Source of the DNA: Hemiscyllium ocellatum
Lineage: Eukaryota
Direction of reading: 5' to 3'
Length of the DNA: 37,737 nucleotides
NCBI RefSeq assembly: GCF_020745735.1
Contig: NW_026867842.1
Coordinates: 62,001 to 99,737 of the forward strand
How positions within the stretch are numbered: the stretch's first letter is position 1; each line of letters opens with the position of its first letter. Position numbers and translations under genes: made by a program. The notes below the pieces were generated by a model that was not told the DNA's origin, ran no database searches, and worked only from the letters and a program-made list of their open reading frames with translations. Shown one piece after another: positions 1,039 through 37,482 of this stretch.

Positions 1039-3470
1039 ATTGGCAGTGAAGAAGGCTGTCTAAGAATACAATGGAATCTTGATCAACTGGGCCAGTGGGC
1101 TGAGGAATGGCAGATGGAGTTTAATTCAGATACATGTGAGTGCTATATTTTGGTAAGACACAAGACATGGGTGAGATCCCAAACAAATATTTCAGGTCAG
1201 TATATATTGTGGAGAAAGCTAGGGAATTTGGAAAAATAGTGATGTCTTGAAAAGAGACCACACACAAATGAGGAGACGCTCAAGATCTGAAAACACATAA
1301 AAGTAGTAGATAAACCCTAGGACCTGATCAGGTGTATCCCAGAACATTGTGGCAAACTAGGGAAGAGATTGCTGGGCCCCTTACTGAGATATGTGTATCA
1401 CTGACAACTATGGGTAAGGTGCTGGAGAACCAGAGAGGTTGGCTAATGTTATGCCATTATTTAAGAAAGAAAGACTGTAAGGAAAAGCCAGGGAATTATA
1501 GACCAGTGAGCCTGATGTCAGTGTTGGGTAAGATGTTGGAGTGGATTCTGTGGGATAGGATTTACATTCTTTGGATAATCAATGTGGTTTTATGCATAGG
1601 AAATCATGTCTCCTGAATTTGATTGAGGAGGTGACAAAGAAGATTTATGGAGATAGAACAATAGACATTGTCAATATGGACTTCAGTAAAGTTTTTGACA
1701 AGGTTCCACATGATAGACTGGTTAGTAAGGTTAGACCACATGGGATCCAGGGGGAGTGAGCCATTGGGATAAAAAAATTGGATTGAAGATAGGAGACAGG
1801 AGTGGTGGTAAAAGGTTGCTTTTCAGACTGGAGATCTGTGAATAGCTGTGTGCCACTAACATTGGTGCTGGATTCACTATTTTATAGAAATGATTTGGAT
1901 GTGAATATAGGAGTTACAGTAAGTTTGTAGATGATATCTAAATTGGTACGATAGTGGATAGCGAAGAAATTCATCTCAGAGTACAGCGGGACCTTCATCA
2001 GATGGGGCAATGGGCAGAGGTGTAGCATATGGAGTTCAGTTTAGATAACTGTGAGATGTTGCATTTTGGAAAGGCAACCCAGGGCAGGAGTTAGACAGTT
2101 AATGGGAGGGCCCTGTGGAGTGTTGCTGAACAAAGAGACCTCGGATTGAAGATGCAAGTGCATTATTACTTGAAAGTGGGGTCACAAGTAGACAGGGTGA
2201 TGAAGAAGGTGTTGGGTACACTTGCTTTTATTGGTCACTATTTTGAGTATAGGAGTTGGGACATCATGTTGCAGCTGTACAGGAGATTAGTGAGGCCACT
2301 TTGGCAATAATGTGAACAATCCTGATCACCTTGAAAATAGGAAGGATGCTGTTAAACTTATAAAGCTGCAGAAAAGATTTACAAGGACATGGCCAGGAAT
2401 TGGAGGGTTTGAGCTATAGGGAAAGGCTGAAGAAACTGGGTCTATTTTTCCTACAGCATCTAAGGCTTCGGGGTGACCTTATAGATGTTTATACAATCAT
2501 GAGGGGCATGGACAGGGTGTATATCCAAGGCCTTTTCTTTGGGAAAGGGAGTCCAAAACAAGATGGCATAGGTTTAAGGTGAGAGGCAAAATATTCAAAA
2601 GGGACCTGAGGGGTAACTTGTCACACAGAGGGTGGTATGTGTCTGGATCGAGCTGCCAGAGTAAGTATTGGAGGCAGATACTATTACAGCATTTAAAACG
2701 CATTGGGATGGGTACATGAATCGGAAGGGTTTTGAGGAATGTAAGCAAAATGCTGGCAAATGGGATGAGGTGATTTAGGATATCTGGTTAGTATGGACAA
2801 GTTGAACTGAAAGGTCTGTTTCCACGCTGTATGACTCCATGACGATGAGAAGCTGGAAAAGCTGAAACTTTTTATTCTGACACGTAAGAGTCTGAGGAGT
2901 GACCTTGTAAAGGTTTATAAAATCATGAGGGTCATAGAAAATGTGAATAATTCAGGAAGGAGCTGAAGTTTTGTAGAAATGGCAAAAAATATTCCTGAAG
3001 ATCCTTCCAGGGATGAGGAACATCAGTTATACAGATTGATTGGAGAATTGGGGACTGTCTTCTTTGGCGAAGGCTGAGAGGAGATTTGTTTGAGGAATTA
3101 AAACCAGGAGGGGCCTGGACAGGGTAAATAGGGAGAAAATGTTCCCAATTGAGAAAGGATTGAGACCGAGAGAACACAGATTTAAAGTAATAAGTAAAAG
3201 TAACAAAAGTGAGAGGGGGAACAACATTTTCAGCCAGTGGGTGGTTAAGGTGTGGAATGCACTGCCTAAGAGTGTGGTGGAGGCAGCTTCAATTAAAACA
3301 TTCCGAAGGGAATGAGACTGTTATTTGAAAAGGAACAATGTGCAGGGTGACAGGGAGAAGGCAGGAGAATGACACTCAGTGAATTGCTCAGTCGGAGAAC
3401 CATGACAGACAGGATGGACGGAATGGCCTCCTTGTGCACTGTAACTATTCTGTGATTGTGTGATTGAGCA
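1039..3470 (+). mobile_element. Several stacked CR1 ORF2 (RT) fragments and 3' ends
   Basis: Translations NYRPVSLMS, NMDFSKVFDKVPHDRL, YRERLKKLGLF; 3' UTR motifs; many stops and frameshifts. Confidence 0.9.
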
Positions 3471-3510
3471 GAGTTAAAGCTGGGGGAGGTGGGAGCTCGG
3501 TGTCTCACTG

Positions 3511-3542
<32 letters not shown>
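3511..3542. repeat. (TGC)10 trinucleotide microsatellite
   Basis: Directly visible. Confidence 0.97.
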
Positions 3543-3915
3543 AGGTCAGTGAGATCAGAGACTGGGACAGGGAGCCAGAGCTCACATCAAACTCTGCCCC
3601 GTGTCCGTCACACTGAGACTGGCAGGAGGCTACTCACTGATTTCACTCCATGCTGCAGGAATGGGACCACAGGCTGCAAATGGACAGAGCTCCTCCACAC
3701 GGTGAGTAAAACTGACTGACTTATATCTTGCTTCTTAAAGGGGGCAATGGAACTGAAGTGGTACGGTTGGACAACTGTTAGACACAGTGCTCCTTAATCA
3801 ACCATTTCGTTCACTGCAGCTCCCCACTAACACCTTCAACAAATCAGTAACTGTATTTTAGAAAGTGTGTTTCAGTATTGAAAGGGTTAATAACAGAGGA
3901 TTGAGGTTTACTTAC

Positions 3916-3950
3916 TCAGTCTGAGCTTGGTTCCTTTACCGAACGTGTCC
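3916..3950 (-). CDS. IGKJ: Ig light-chain (kappa-type) J segment, DTFGKGTKLRL
   Basis: FGXG motif; phase-1 splice donor A|GTAAGT at 3915; flanked by a consensus 23-RSS. Confidence 0.95.
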
Positions 3951-3989
3951 CACAGTGAGAGTTCCCAGTGCAGAGGCTGTACAAAAACC
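3951..3989 (+). other. 23-bp-spacer RSS of J
   Basis: CACAGTG 3951-3957, 23-nt spacer 3958-3980, ACAAAAACC 3981-3989; perfect consensus. Confidence 0.98.
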
Positions 3990-4421: not shown

Positions 4422-4449
4422 GGTTTTTGTATGGCTCTGTATCACTGTG
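4422..4449 (-). other. 12-bp-spacer RSS of V (cluster 1)
   Basis: Minus strand CACAGTG (4449-4443), 12-nt spacer, ACAAAAACC (4430-4422); perfect consensus. V-12/J-23 is the kappa configuration. Confidence 0.98.
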
Positions 4450-4754
4450 TTGAGCGGAGCTGCTATACCAGTTGTTCTGACAGTAATAGTCAGCGACATC
4501 CTCATTCTGAACGTTGCTGATTGTCAGGGTGTAACTGGTCCCTGATCCACTGCCGGTGAATCGCTCGGAGACTCCTGTGAATCGAGATGTTGCAGCATAG
4601 ATCAGGAGAGAGGGTTTCTGACCTTCTCGCTGCTGGTACCAACTGAGGTAGCTGCTAATGTCTTGACTGGCCGTACAGGTGAGTTTTGCGGTCTGGCCCA
4701 ATCCCACTGACAACACCGGGGGAGACTGGGTCATGATAATCTCCCCATTGATAC
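4450..4754 (-). CDS. IGKV: Ig kappa-type V exon, unrearranged, open frame ([27 protein letters not shown]...WYQQ...[17 protein letters not shown])
   Basis: Conserved Cys, Trp and YYC; FTGSGSGT; acceptor CCTCAG at 4760-4755; resembles shark kappa (NS4/type III-like) V regions. Confidence 0.96.
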
Positions 4755-4940
4755 CTGAGGGGTCAGAGAGAAACACAGTGAAGTCAGAACTGTCACAGAA
4801 AGAGCCGGTCAAATGAGAGATTGTTGGAGACACTGAGCATTCCTCTGGTTTCAGCATTTTCCCTTCAATCACAAGTCAGTGGAATTGGAGTGAAATGGAG
4901 AGCAGCTAAAGATTCAAGGTGGAAGGAGAGAGATTTGTAC

Positions 4941-4988
4941 CTGCGACACAGAATGCCAGGGGCCAGATCAGCTGGATGTGTGAATCAT
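4941..4988 (-). CDS. V leader exon, frameshifted as given (ATG ATT CAC ACA TCC AGC TGA)
   Basis: 48 nt from ATG to GT donor at 4940; 186-nt intron. Restoring one T (present in cluster 2) gives MISHIQLIWPLAFCVA+G in phase 1. Confidence 0.9.
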
Positions 4989-5046
4989 GGTGTGTGCTCC
5001 TGTCCCTGTGCCTGGTTCCTGATAAACTCTCCCTTCACTGGGCTCT

Positions 5047-5141
5047 GCTTTATAAAGCTGCAGCCTGTGAGAGTCTGACTGGGTGTTCCTCAGTATGTAA
5101 ATGGCATCAGGCAGAGAGAGCCACGTCAGCCCCTCACACTT

Positions 5142-5145
<4 letters not shown>
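5047..5145 (-). promoter_or_regulatory. V promoter of cluster 1
   Basis: TATAAA within GCTTTATAAAGC (5047-5058), octamer variant ATTTACAT (5102-5095), TGACGTGG (5128-5121), ETS-like GAGGAAGTG (5145-5137). Confidence 0.8.
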
Positions 5146-5172
<27 letters not shown>

Positions 5173-5803: not shown

Positions 5804-5845
5804 CCCTAACCCTTACCCTAACCCTAACCCTAAACCTAACCCTAC
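5804..5845. repeat. Interstitial telomere-like (CCCTAA)7, imperfect
   Basis: CCCTAA CCCTTA CCCTAA CCCTAA CCCTAA ACCTAA CCCTAC. Confidence 0.85.
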
Positions 5846-5869
5846 TCCTGCTCTCTATTTCTATCTTTG

Positions 5870-9430: not shown

Positions 9431-9780
9431 TATGTGCTGTCAGATTCCAGGGAGTGCAGACAGTTCACAGTTTTCTCCCGTCTCAGTAACAAATGTGCAG
9501 CTGCTCCGAGCTCCTTCTTTCACTTCCTCACTTGGTGAAGTTTCAACCTTGCGATCTGACAGCCTTTGCAGTTATTTTTTACACTGGGGCTTTCTGCTGT
9601 GGTCAGAATCTCTAATAATAAGTGTCCAATCAGTGACAATCACAGCAGCTAAGAGCAGTCAGGACTGAGTAGCCAGGCTCACTGGGAAACACATTGGGAA
9701 GATCAAAGCCATCCCCTTCAGGTCCCGGTACAACCTCCATCCCTCTCCCTGAGCACTGTCTGCTGCTCAACCAGACTCTT
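9430..9780. promoter_or_regulatory. Conserved non-coding element, candidate B-cell enhancer (copy 1)
   Basis: Inverted homolog at 30850-31200; 96-nt core 9573-9668 has 1 mismatch; motifs CAGCTG 9498-9503, TTTCACTTCC 9518-9527, TGTGGT 9598-9603. Confidence 0.6.
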
Positions 9781-9783
9781 TAC

Positions 9784-9995
9784 AAAAACAGAATACCTCA
9801 GCAGGTCTGGCAGCATCTGGGGAAAGAAATCAGAGTTAACCTTTCAGGTCGAGTGACCCTTCCTCAGAACAGTTCTGAGAAGGTTCACGTCCCAAAATTT
9901 TAACTCTGCTTTCTCTCCACAGATGGTGCCAGACCTGCCGAGCTTTTCCAGCAATTTCTGTTTTTGTTCCTCATTTGCAGCATCTGCAGCTTTTT
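9784..9995. mobile_element. Inverted pair of Penelope-type terminal fragments forming a palindrome
   Basis: Centre CTCAGAAC-A-GTTCTGAG (9863-9879); about 90-bp related arms; hammerhead-like core in the left arm (minus strand). Confidence 0.7.
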
Positions 9996-23209: not shown

Positions 23210-24249
23210 AGCAAAGAAGGTTACCTCAGATTACAACGGGATCTTGATCAGATGGGCCAATGGGCTGAGAAGTGGCAGATGGAGTTTAATTCAGATAAAT
23301 GCGAGGTGATACATTTTGGGAAAGCAAACCTTAGCAGGACTTATACACTTAATGATAAGGTCCTAGAGAGTGTTGCTGAACAAAGAGACCTTAGAGTGCA
23401 GGTTCATAGCTCCTTGAAAGTGGAGTCACAGGTAGATAGGATAGTGAAGAAGGTGTTTGCTATGCTTTCCTTTATTGGTCAGAGTATCGAATAGAGGAGT
23501 TAGGAGGTCATGTTGTGGCTGTATACGACATTGGTGAGGCCACTGTTGAAATATTCTGGTCTCCTTCCTATCGAAAAGATGTTGTGAAACTTGAAAGTGT
23601 TCAAAAAAGATTTATTAGGATGTTGCCAGGGTTGGAGGATTTGAGCTAAAGTGAGAGGCTGAACAGGCTGGGGCTGTTTTCCCTGGAGCGGCAGAGGTTG
23701 AGGGGTGACCTTATAGAAGTTTACAAAATTATGAGGAGCATGGATAGGATAAATAGTCAAAGTCTTTTCCCTGGGGTTGGGGAGTCCAGAACTAGAGGGC
23801 ATAGGTTTAGGGTGAGAGGGGAATGATATAAAAGAGACGCAAGGGGCAACTTTTTCACACAGAGAGTGGTATGTGTATGGAATGAGCTGCCAGAGGAAGT
23901 GGTGGAGGCTGGTACAATTGCAACATTTAAAAGGCATTTGGATGCACACATGAATAAAAATGGTTTGGGGGGATGTGGGCCGGGTGCTGGCAGGTGGGAC
24001 TAGATTGGGTTGGGACATCTGGTCGGCATGGACAGGTTGGACCAAAGGGTTTGTTTCCACGTTGTACATCTCTATGTCTCGCTGACTCTGTATTCCCAAG
24101 TGCCGTTCAATGTTCTCAGTTCAACCACATTACTGGTCAAGCTCCTTACATTGAAATAGCTACAATTCAGCTTTCTGATCCTCCTGTATTCTGGATCGTG
24201 TCCTAGTGGTCACTCAGTGGTTTTCTGCATTGCCCTTACTTTCCCATGA

Positions 24250-29263: not shown

Positions 29264-30314
29264 TAGAGTCAAAGAGTCATCGAGTCCTACAGCACAGAGA
29301 CAGGCTTTTTGGTCCACACTGGTCCATGCTGACCAAAATGTCCATCCATGCTAACCCCATTTCCCTGCACTTGGCCCATATCCTTCGGAGCCTTTCCTAT
29401 CCATGCATTTGTCCAAATGCCTTTTTAAAGTTGTTAATATACCCGCCTCAATCACTTCCACTGGCAGATCATTCCATATGCGTGCCACCCTCTGTGTAAA
29501 AAGTTGTCCCTCAGGTTCCCTTTTATTCTTTCCCTCTAACCTAAAACCCCTCTCATCCTCAATTCCCCAACCCTGGGAAAAAGACTGAGTGCATTCACCC
29601 TATCCATGTCTCTCAAGGTCTTATACACTTCTAAAAAAAACCCTCAGTCTCCTACACTCTCTGAAAAAAGTCCTAGCTTGTCCAACCTCTCACAAAAACT
29701 CAGACTGTTGAGTCCTGGCAACATGCTTGTACATTTCCTCTGAACTTGTTCCAGTTTAATAATGTCCTTCCTATAACAAGGTGACCAAATACTCCAAGTG
29801 CGACCTCACCAACGTTCTGTACAATGGTAACATAACTTCTCAACTTCTATACTCAATGCCCTGACTGATGAAGGCCAGTGTGTCAAAAGCCTTCCTCACT
29901 GCCCTGTCGAATTGTGACTCAACTTCCAGAGAACCGTGTACCTGAACTCCAAGATCTCTCTGTTTCACTACAGTCCTTAAGGCCTTACCATTCACCATGG
30001 TACTCCCACCTCGATTAAACTTCCGAAAGTGCAAGACCTCACAATTATCTCTCTGAACTCATTTTGTCATTTCTCTGCTCATTTCTCCAGCTGATCAAGG
30101 TCCTGCTGCAATTTCTGATAACCTCCCTCAATGTCTACTGTAATGTCATCTGCAAACTTACCAATCATTCCTTGCAGATTCTCATCCAAGTTATTGATGT
30201 AAATAGCAAAGAGTAATGGGCCCAGGACCGAGCCCTGAGGCGCTCCACTAGACACAGGCCTCTAGTCTGACAAGCATCCTTCCACTGTTACCCACTGCTT
30301 CGTACCATCAAGCC
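29264..30314 (-). mobile_element. CR1 insertion specific to arm 2
   Basis: Flanks join seamlessly in arm 1 (about 10560-10620); AATTA at 29259-29263 and 30315-30319 may be a short TSD. Confidence 0.75.
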
Positions 30315-30849
30315 AATTAAAGAAAAGTATTTGTCTTTGGTCAGGAATTAGTTTGGAGGTAGGAGGCAGAGAGGAAGAATAGTGAGTGCATCCTCCAGTG
30401 AGGAAGATGTGAATAGTGGTATCCCCAGGGATCTGTGCTGGGAGCTCAGCATTTTATGATATTTCTGAATGACTTGGATGAAGAAACAGAGAGCTGTACA
30501 TCCAAGATTGCTGATCACACTGACTGAGGCAGAGATAGGGAGGGTGGAGGGCAGAGAGGGTTTTGCGAACAAGGATGAGAACTCGACAATCAAGGAGTTG
30601 CTGGAGAGGAGCCAATGTAGATACAGGGTGCAGGGGGTTGGGGGAACAGGACTTGATGCAAGTTTGAATACAGGCATCAGAATTTGGGATGAACTGAAGG
30701 TTATGGAGGGCGATTGCTGTGATGTGTGCTAGCACAACATTGGAATGGTCATGTTTGGAGTCCCACAGACATGATTGAGATTTTCAGTGGCTGGTCTGTA
30801 TAATATGGAGGATATAGGGGTCAGATCATTCTCAGAGATGTGGCCACGT

Positions 30850-31200
30850 TTGTAAAGGGTCTGGTTGTGCAGCAGACCCCCAGGGAGAGGGATGGAGTTT
30901 GGAGCAGGAGATGAAGAGGATGGCTTTGATCTTCCCAATATGTTACACAGTGAGTCCGGGCTTTTCAGTCCTGACTGCTCTTAGCTGCTGTGATTGTCAC
31001 TGATTAGACACTTATTATTAGAGATTCTGACCACAGCAGAAAGCCCCAGTGTAAAAAATAGTTGCAAGACTGTCAGAGCACAAGGTTGAAAATTCACCAA
31101 AAGAGGAAGTGAAAGAAGGAGCTCGGAGCAGCTGGGTGTTTGTTACTGAGAGGGAGAAAACTGTGAACTGTCTGCTCTCCCTGGAACCTGACAGCACAGG
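30850..31200. promoter_or_regulatory. Conserved non-coding element, candidate enhancer (copy 2)
   Basis: Core 30965-31060; ACCACA 31030-31035; GGAAGTGAAA 31105-31114; CAGCTG 31129-31134. Confidence 0.6.
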
Positions 31201-33299: not shown

Positions 33300-34540
33300 T
33301 CATCATAGAGTCATAGAGGTTTACAGCATGGAATCAGGCCCTTCAGCCCAACTCATCCATGCCCACCAAGTTCCAAAACTGAACTAATCCCATTTGCCTG
33401 TGTTTGGCCCAAATCTCTCTGAATCCTTCCTATCCATGTTGCTGTAAAAATCTCCTTGAAATGTAGTAACTGTACTCCCCCTCTACCACTTCTCTGGCAG
33501 CTCATTACACATACACACCAACCTCTGTGTGAAAAGGTTCGCTCTCAGTTTCCTTCTAATTCTTTCCCCCCTCAACTTAAACCTATTCCTTCTAGTACTG
33601 GATTCTCCTACCCTGGGGAAAAGACTTTGGCTATTTACCTTATCTATGACTCTCATGATTCTATAAACCTATATAAGGTCACCCCTCAATCTCCTGCATT
33701 CACTGGAAAAACATCTTGGCATATCCATCCTCGCCTTATAATTCAAACCCTCCAATCTTGGTAACATCCCTGTTAATCTTTCTTTTATTCAAACCAGCGT
33801 AATAACTTCCTTCCTATAGCAGGGTGAGCAGAAAAATACACAGTGACCAAACGTGGCCTTCCCAATGCCTTGTACAGCTGTAACATGATGTCCCAGCTCC
33901 TGTACTCCCTGCTTTGACCAGTGAAGGTGAGCGTGCCAAATACCTTCTTCACCACCCTGTCTACCTGTGACACCATTTTCAAGGAACTATGTACCTGTAC
34001 CCCTCGGTCTCTCTGTTCAACAACACTCCCCATGGCTCTACCATTAATTGTGTAATTCCTGCCCTGGTTTGTCTTACCAAAATGCAACTCCTTCTTTTAT
34101 CAAAATTTCCATCTGGATTTGTTGACTCACTGGCCCAGTTGATCAAGATGACATTGCACTTTTGGATAACCTTCTTCCCTGTCCACGATGCCAACAATTT
34201 TAATGTCAGCCAAAAATGTCCTGACCGTTCCTGCTATTTTCTCTCCAAATTGTTCATATAAATGACGAACAACAGTGGATCCAGGATCGATTCTTGTGGC
34301 AGACGGCTGGTCACTGGCCTCCAGTCTGAAGAACAACCCTCTCTCACAGCCTCTGCCTCCTATCATCAGGCCAATTTTATATCCAATTTGCTCGGTCTCC
34401 TTGGATCCTATGTGATATAATCTTACTGAGCAATCTACCATGAGGAACCTTGTCTAAGGCCTTGCTAAAGTCCAAGTAAACAGAGTGTACTGCTCTAGCT
34501 TTATCTAGGTTTGTGATTACTTCTTCAAAAACTCAGTCAT
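33300..34540 (-). mobile_element. CR1 RT-to-3' end inserted into the minisatellite of arm 2
   Basis: MHFGKTNQGRNYTING...DIMLQLYKALGRPRL; tail near 33305. Confidence 0.85.
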
Positions 34541-36741: not shown

Positions 36742-36772
<31 letters not shown>

Positions 36773-36773
36773 A

Positions 36774-36872
36774 GAGGAAGTGTGAGGGGCTGACGTGGCT
36801 CTCTCTGCCTGATGCCATTTACATACTGAGGAACACCCAGTCAGACTCTCACAGGCTGCAGCTTTATAAAGC
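36774..36872 (+). promoter_or_regulatory. V promoter of cluster 2
   Basis: GAGGAAGTG 36774-36782, TGACGTGG 36791-36798, ATTTACAT 36817-36824, TATAAA 36865-36870; identical to cluster 1. Confidence 0.8.
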
Positions 36873-36930
36873 AGAGCCCAGTGAAGGGAGAGTTTATCAG
36901 GAACCAGGCACAGGGACAGGAGCACACACC

Positions 36931-36978
36931 ATGATTTCACACATCCAGCTGATCTGGCCCTGGAATTCTGTGTCGCAG
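36931..36978 (+). pseudogene. V leader exon with a 1-nt deletion (MISHIQLIWP, then shifted; donor in phase 0)
   Basis: GGCCC instead of GGCCCC; GT donor at 36979; 186-nt intron to 37164. Confidence 0.88.
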
Positions 36979-37164
36979 GTACAAATCTCTCTCCTTCCAC
37001 CTTGAATCTTTAGCTGCTCTCCATTTCACTCCAATTCCACTGACTTGTGATTGAAGGGAAAATGCTGAAACCAGAGGAATGCTCAGTGTCTCCAACAATC
37101 TCTCATTTGACAGGCTCTTTCTGTGAAAGTTCTGACTTCACTGTGTTTCTCTCTGATCCCTCAG

Positions 37165-37454
37165 GTATCAGTGAGGACATCATCATGACCTAGTCTCCCC
37201 CACTGCTGTCAGTGGGACTGGGCCAGACCGCAACCATCACCTGTAGGGCCATTAGCAGCTACCTTGCTTGGTACCAGTAGCGAGAAGGTCAGAAACCCTC
37301 TCTCCCGATCTATGCTGCAGCAACTCAACTCACAGGAAGTCTCCGAGCAATTCACCGGCAGTGGATCAGGGACCAGTTTCACCCTGACAATCAGCAACAT
37401 TCAGAATGAGGATGTTGCTGACTATTGACTGTCAGCAGCATTACAGCTGGCCTT
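37165..37454 (+). pseudogene. IGKV: Ig kappa-type V pseudogene
   Basis: TAG stops at 37191 and 37278; 9-nt CDR1 deletion at 37250/37251; +1 insertions near 37337 and 37427; CDR3 start CQQHYSWP. Confidence 0.95.
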
Positions 37455-37482
37455 ACCGGTGATACAGGGCCATCCAAAAATC
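37455..37482 (+). other. Degenerate 12-RSS of the V pseudogene
   Basis: ACCGGTG, spacer ATACAGGGCCAT (homologous to the cluster-1 spacer), CCAAAAATC; the essential CAC is lost. Confidence 0.8.

Follow-up and report, generated by a model that had tools for sequence, protein, structure and literature searches.

A near-identical promoter-leader-intron cassette is shared by the kappa light-chain clusters of Hemiscyllium ocellatum and lies beside diverged V exons

Why should two immunoglobulin gene copies that have diverged over most of their length still share a few hundred nearly unchanged nucleotides of promoter, leader and intron, and is this resemblance private to the two copies? The question arises from a window of 37,737 nucleotides (the whole stretch of Hemiscyllium ocellatum DNA analysed here, contig NW_026867842.1, positions 62,001 to 99,737), in which two inverted arms, A (minus strand) and B (plus strand), carry V segments of shark-type kappa (NS4/type III) V-J-C clusters, head to head and about 31–32 kb apart. 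The original prediction for this locus attributed the near-identity to an ectopic conversion that recently homogenised the regulatory cassette of the two arms while their V exons diverged or decayed. As described below, the near-identity is a property of the whole kappa family and not of this pair.

The shared tract belongs to an immunoglobulin kappa (NS4/type III-like) V segment, of which it takes in promoter, 5′UTR, leader exon and leader intron, and the two arms are laid out as follows:

5147..5172, minus strand: (GA)n microsatellite of arm A, the upstream boundary of the low-divergence island
4989..5146, minus strand: promoter and 5′UTR of arm A, identical to arm B
5095-5102, minus strand: octamer-like motif of arm A, ATTTACAT
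5048-5057, minus strand: TATA box of arm A, CTTTATAAAG
4941..4988, minus strand: leader exon of arm A, 48 nt, with a 1-nt deletion that puts the ATG out of frame
4755..4940, minus strand: leader intron of arm A, 186 nt, its first ~120 nt (4821-4940) lying in the core island
4450..4754, minus strand: V exon of arm A, open, a kappa-like V-set domain (Pfam V-set, E = 1e-16)
4422..4449, minus strand: V recombination signal sequence (RSS) of arm A, CACAGTG, a 12-nt spacer and ACAAAAACC
3916..3989, minus strand: J segment of arm A with its RSS, ~0.5 kb beyond the V RSS
3951-3989, minus strand: J RSS of arm A, nonamer GGTTTTTGT, a 23-nt spacer and heptamer CACTGTG
3916-3950, minus strand: J coding part of arm A (TFGKGTKLRL)
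3910-3915, minus strand: J splice donor of arm A, GTAAGT, just beyond the J part
36747..36772, plus strand: (GA)n microsatellite of arm B
36773..36930, plus strand: promoter and 5′UTR of arm B
36817-36824, plus strand: octamer-like motif of arm B
36862-36871, plus strand: TATA box of arm B
36931..36978, plus strand: leader exon of arm B, with a 1-nt deletion in a CCCC run and one private substitution
36979..37164, plus strand: leader intron of arm B, 186 nt
37165..37455, plus strand: V pseudo-exon of arm B, with frameshifts and in-frame stops, 9 nt deleted from CDR1 and a degenerate RSS

Arm B is thus a decayed pseudogene, with its ATG at 36931 (a correction to the earlier annotation), while arm A has an intact V exon and a leader with a 1-nt deletion; the family consensus leader exon is 49 nt long and encodes MISHIQLIWPLAFCVA. 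The top PDB matches of the arm A V domain are antibody light-chain V domains, and its closest database proteins are V domains of Chiloscyllium punctatum (76–89% identity). RNA-type contigs from a related species agree with this gene model: they show the 186-nt splice joint, V joined to J with insertions at the junction, a splice leaving J at 3916|3915, and a climb in depth at ~5000-5030. By open reading frame pattern and by a motif taken from spliced RNA, no C exon was found in the window or in the 8.8 kb downstream of the J segment of a paralogue. In neighbouring clusters, the C-exon start motif lies ~10–12 kb downstream of the V-J units, so the C exon of arm A is expected just outside the start of the window.

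The arms also carry several unrelated features. A telomere-like interstitial (TTAGGG)n run at 5815-5865, upstream of arm A, has no counterpart in arm B. The J-C intron of arm A contains a LINE reverse-transcriptase fragment (1332-1759 on the plus strand, and 1651-2843), with LINE-related copies also at 23214-24093, 29269-30318 and 33310-34500. A block at 9433-9786 is 89% identical to 30849-31198 amid arms that are ~75% identical, and had earlier been put forward as a candidate enhancer.

When arm A, on its reverse strand, was globally aligned to arm B, the predicted contrast between tract and surroundings was borne out. Only 4 substitutions and two 1-nt indels separate positions 4755-5146 (minus) from 36773-37164 (plus), as had been counted. 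The 185 columns that run from the (GA)n repeat up to the ATG contain a single substitution, located within the repeat, and the last 178 nt before the ATG show no difference. The leader exons differ by 1 substitution and the two 1-nt indels, namely a base missing in A after ATGA (~4982/4983) and one C of the CCCC run missing in B (A 4962; arm B 36957). The 186-nt introns differ by the three expected substitutions (A 4807, 4792 and 4762), two of which (A 4792 and 4762) align with positions where arm B has alleles typical of a pseudogene group. Beyond the tract, identity falls to 88.8% in the V exons (303 columns, of which 32 are substitutions and 17 gaps) and to 87.3% in the RSS and the sequence downstream of it (308 columns, with 35 substitutions and 32 gaps). 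On the other side, the ~580 nt that precede the (GA)n repeat cannot be aligned between the arms, and further upstream come blocks of ~75% identity. The tract has fewer differences than its flanks (P = 3e-12 for ≤4 substitutions falling in 390 of 952 sites that carry 71 substitutions).

To place the pair within its family, we searched the genome for short patterns. A promoter 40-mer was found at 185 sites with ≤1 mismatch and an intron 40-mer at 180 sites, about 20% of clusters lacking these 40-mers at that threshold; the C-exon start motif occurs 233 times genome-wide, which implies about 230 kappa V-J-C clusters. One chromosome-scale contig carries clusters across roughly 5.6–24 Mb, and several small contigs carry others. 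Among the first 100 promoter matches listed (contig C9, 9.3–19.8 Mb) there are at least 25 head-to-head (minus, plus) promoter pairs 28–38 kb apart, and the pairing of an A-type with a B-type arm recurs at least 7 times in the sampled loci. The inverted arms of the window are one copy of a recurring two-cluster module. The numbers and genomic distribution of shark Ig clusters have been called "not well known", with up to about 100 loci per isotype cited (PMC12227049); the 233 kappa C-exon starts exceed the "as many as 100 loci" per isotype given there.

The module partners share one further block, in the J-C intron at 3461-3620 (minus strand), where ~160 nt are identical between the A-type and B-type lineages and 3–6% off group C. 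This block, of which the arm B copy would lie beyond the contig end, is a candidate for either arm-to-arm conversion or an intronic regulatory element.

The tract itself is common to the family. When the arm B tract was compared with its own genome, 225 candidates were obtained, and all 40 that were scored are 98–100% identical to it. We then aligned 51 distinct loci, of which 30 had been picked by tract similarity and 30 by similarity of the V-J and J-downstream flanks (9 in both); these are the best-scoring matches and not a census. In nearly all clusters, a core of ~325 nt from the (GA)n repeat to the middle of the intron lies within ~1% of a single consensus. Across the 51 loci, tract divergence is 0.5% where the flanks differ by <1%, and only 1.2–1.5% where the flanks average 6–16% (flank p-distances being possibly inflated by alignment near indels), so that cassette divergence is independent of duplication age and stays at ~1% whatever the flank divergence. 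Divergence between the three large flank-defined groups, region by region, was:

Directly across (GA)n, upstream: a jump from ≤1% to 5–9% (groups B vs C) or unalignable sequence
Promoter: 0.4–0.7% (0.2–0.7% over between-group comparisons in general)
Core island (A 5146-4821): 0–1.7%
Framework synonymous sites: 8.3%
V-J spacer: 13–17%
J-downstream: 8–11%

Old, diverged flanks therefore lie on both sides of the cassette, which forms a valley between them, and the family is not uniformly young. The upstream limit of this valley is the (GA)n repeat, as predicted for the tract of the two arms. The predicted downstream limit, at the V splice acceptor, does not hold family-wide: the sharp island stops ~65 nt earlier (core A 5146-4821), and its 3′ boundary is a gradient running through the last ~65 nt of the intron, where group-specific variants occur in arm A, and into FR1. 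Within the V exons, CDR pN/pS reaches 1.5–2.1. The concept of a concerted regulatory cassette decoupled from its V exon is thereby upheld at the level of the family, with a cassette at ~1% beside diverged V exons and flanks.

The decoupling is also seen in a deep V subfamily, whose V exons (17–19%) and V-J spacers (15–19%) are highly diverged and whose upstream sequence is unalignable, but whose promoters and introns lie only 0.6–2.6% and 0.5–2.2%, respectively, from the main consensus. The cassettes of these loci form a star around the main consensus, with no changes common to the subfamily, and in its youngest pair (L071/L072) the cassette differs by 2.1% versus 0.4–2.5% in the flanks. The subfamily consists of loci L069–L072 (C9, 19.4–24.0 Mb, and C10), with Chiloscyllium punctatum counterparts on contigs L064, L066 and L067.

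V exons show a finer pattern of their own. Among clusters with 98–100% identical flanks (L032–L045), V exons are 3–6% apart, with differences in clustered patches. Such differences include an FR1 patch of ~7 changes in 35 nt, which in the sample only arm A has, a dinucleotide change in CDR1 and a 6-nt indel in CDR3. The patches, for which no donor was found, could reflect conversion of V-exon patches, a mutation cluster or selection.

What holds the cassette so close to one consensus? We favour, with a probability of roughly 0.6, family-wide concerted evolution by recurrent short-tract ectopic conversion together with selection on the family, a mechanism that we infer from the patterns of variation rather than having observed it. 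The strongest competing account, which we consider unlikely, is that purifying selection alone keeps promoter, leader and 5′ intron ultraconserved in every copy, with no exchange between copies. It gains from the fact that the island spans the octamer, the TATA box and the leader, from an excess of rare variants in the cassette (19 singletons versus 18 shared sites), and from conservation between species. The consensus cassette occurs verbatim under at least five other organism labels (share of words 0.98–1.00), as strong constraint would predict, whereas related species keep just 35–38% of the words of the surrounding 2.6 kb, a comparison for which neutral divergence between the species is only roughly estimated. 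Several species thus have one main consensus in common; the C. punctatum contigs compared are divergent and probably biased to easily assembled copies.

The dead members of the family speak against constraint on each copy. A 14-member pseudogene lineage, which includes arm B, has a common CDR1 deletion and a WYQ* stop in 11 of its 14 members, the site being removed by deletion in the other three; the lineage was therefore dead before it multiplied. Its flanks are 3–7% diverged internally and 10–17% diverged from those of other clusters, yet its leader is intact in all members except arm B, and its cassettes match those of the functional groups at 98.6–98.8% identity. Relative to the flanks, the cassette shows an equal deficit of private substitutions in pseudogenes (7/59) and in functional copies (12/109). 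Pseudogene cassettes are thus as conserved as functional ones, with no relaxation of constraint in dead copies. Living copies tolerate some variation: apparently intact D-type genes have introns 4–5% diverged, and an apparently intact E-type gene has a distal promoter 3.5% diverged. Moreover, any one of ~230 redundant clusters should feel only very weak selection.

The tempo and distribution of cassette variants point the same way. In recent duplicates of group A the cassette differs by 0.54% versus 0.06–0.6% in the flanks; since the cassettes of the youngest duplicates diverge about as their flanks do, the tract is not intrinsically slow to change. On a tree built from the flanks, cassette sites have a consistency index of 0.38 versus 0.59 for control V-J sites, and three transversion sites in the cassette need 7–9 changes each, the same alleles being scattered across the tree. 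Four-gamete violations occur within 186 nt, and identical intron haplotypes are found in flank groups A and C, whose flanks are 8–13% apart. In one locus (L027), majority alleles fill a patch of at least 100 nt within an otherwise subgroup-typical copy. Together with the deep V subfamily, these observations argue that constraint on each copy does not suffice to explain the cassette.

A highly improbable account would make the family the product of a recent burst, with V exons and flanks mutating faster, for example by germline hypermutation-like targeting downstream of the promoter. Very recent duplicates do exist (15 copies with 99–100% identical flanks), their V exons are 3–6% diverged in clustered patches, and across intron and V exon divergence climbs with distance from the start site. 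On the upstream side of the promoter, however, the sequence is as diverged as downstream (5–9% or unalignable), the region >2 kb downstream is 11–20% diverged, and the groups differ in transposon and indel content; divergence on both sides of the island indicates that the flanks record old splits. A simple recent expansion of the family is accordingly excluded by flanks that are 8–17% diverged, and a germline hypermutation-like cause of the diverged V and V-J sequence was rejected on account of the equally diverged upstream flank.

The exchange originally proposed, in which a recent conversion between the window arms homogenised just these two, deserves even less credence. Taken alone, 4 substitutions in 392 nt within arms that are 75–88% identical look like its signature. 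But essentially all kappa paralogues are equally high in promoter and intron identity, an outcome that the original prediction itself had named as its refutation, and since ~180–230 clusters have the same promoter-leader-intron cassette there is no private exchange between A and B to explain. Arm A is only the 34th-best match to the arm B tract, which loci L002 and L003 match at 100%, and the A and B introns carry different group-typical alleles. Across eight head-to-head modules, partner arms differ in the tract by a mean of 5.7 substitutions, versus 5.5 for non-partner A × B pairs of the two lineages of those modules. A GENECONV-style test on family-polymorphic sites, with gaps excluded, detected no significant A-B fragment in the tract, and no private variants common to A and B and absent elsewhere were found among the aligned copies. 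With partners no closer than non-partners, arm-to-arm (palindrome-like) conversion of the cassette was rejected as well.

Least credible is an assembly or polishing artefact that copied the sequence of one paralogue onto others, a concern raised with the original prediction and invited by two leader indels that are each private to A or B and could be consensus errors: the cassette is present at high depth in independent short-read contigs of other individuals and species, which therefore show that it is not an assembly artefact, it recurs in a separate public assembly of Chiloscyllium punctatum, and the unique flanks around the island would anchor long reads. The two private 1-nt leader deletions themselves are suspect, being either real lesions or consensus errors; no contig of an independent individual shows that of arm A (place 4982).

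Returning to recurrent conversion among the clusters, such a process would work as follows. Ectopic (non-allelic) short-tract conversion would repeatedly reset copies to the majority sequence, purifying selection would act on the family consensus, and the extension of tracts would be limited both by diversifying selection on the CDRs and by the turnover of indels and transposons in the flanks. With ~200 copies, a majority-rule process of this kind would hold the consensus nearly static. Selection on the family as a whole probably accompanies conversion, and the mechanism has to be read with the caveat that the island largely coincides with a functional unit (promoter and leader).

Seen in this light, the kappa cassette resembles the concerted families (rDNA, U2 snRNA and histone arrays), in which copies stay near one consensus whatever their age, dead copies are corrected and the consensus changes slowly. 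In contrast to those arrays, just ~325–390 nt of each kappa unit of at least ~12 kb are homogenised, and birth-and-death evolution governs the adjoining V exon, whose CDR pN/pS is 1.5–2.1. A closer parallel in scale is the gene conversion between the human fetal globin genes HBG1 and HBG2, which Slightom, Blechl and Smithies reportedly described in 1980 as bounded by (TG)n in IVS2. There too, a short tract of near-identity lies within older, diverged duplicates and has a microsatellite at one boundary; HBG1 and HBG2, however, are two tandem genes sharing coding exons, while here ~200 dispersed clusters in both orientations share regulatory sequence and an intron. Birth-and-death evolution, which Ota and Nei are said to have set out in 1994 for immunoglobulin V genes, fits the kappa V exons, the pseudogene lineages and the flanks. 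The 5′ cassette differs in that its divergence is decoupled from duplication age.

The nearest described relatives are the nurse shark NS4 (type III, kappa-like) clusters, in which V and J are split, the leader intron measures 186 bp, the V-J spacer 502–524 bp, and an octamer stands upstream of the leader; they comprise many clusters including pseudogenes, with V genes up to 99% alike (PMC2193156). The clusters described here share the 186-nt leader intron, the split V and J, the octamer-bearing promoter and a V-J spacer of ~500 bp. Unlike the present data, the NS4 study, based on phage clones (Lee et al. 2000, PMC2193156), reported no discrete identity island, no set of ~230 clusters and no head-to-head modules. 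Our literature searches found no description of such a promoter-leader-intron island.

These findings bear on the antibody genes of sharks, a system of hundreds of independent mini-clusters whose uniform regulation and evolution are poorly known. At this locus, concerted evolution of a cassette can be followed beside birth-and-death diversification of a V exon, with a boundary between them that can be mapped. There are practical consequences, too: the 5′UTR, leader and intron are unusable for assigning transcripts to clusters, leader primers would amplify functional and dead clusters alike, and perfect repeats of ~400 bp are to be expected at some 200 sites in assemblies. A bolder and more tentative reading, about which we remain rather doubtful, is that every kappa mini-cluster may have a fixed conversion hotspot at its (GA)n repeat and promoter, which would keep the ~325-nt cassette near-identical in ~200 clusters, including those that are dead, and static in several species of carpet shark, while the nearby V exon diversifies under positive selection. 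If so, two opposite modes of multigene-family evolution would be split by a boundary within one intron, and uniform promoters would perhaps be needed for stochastic choice or exclusion among clusters.
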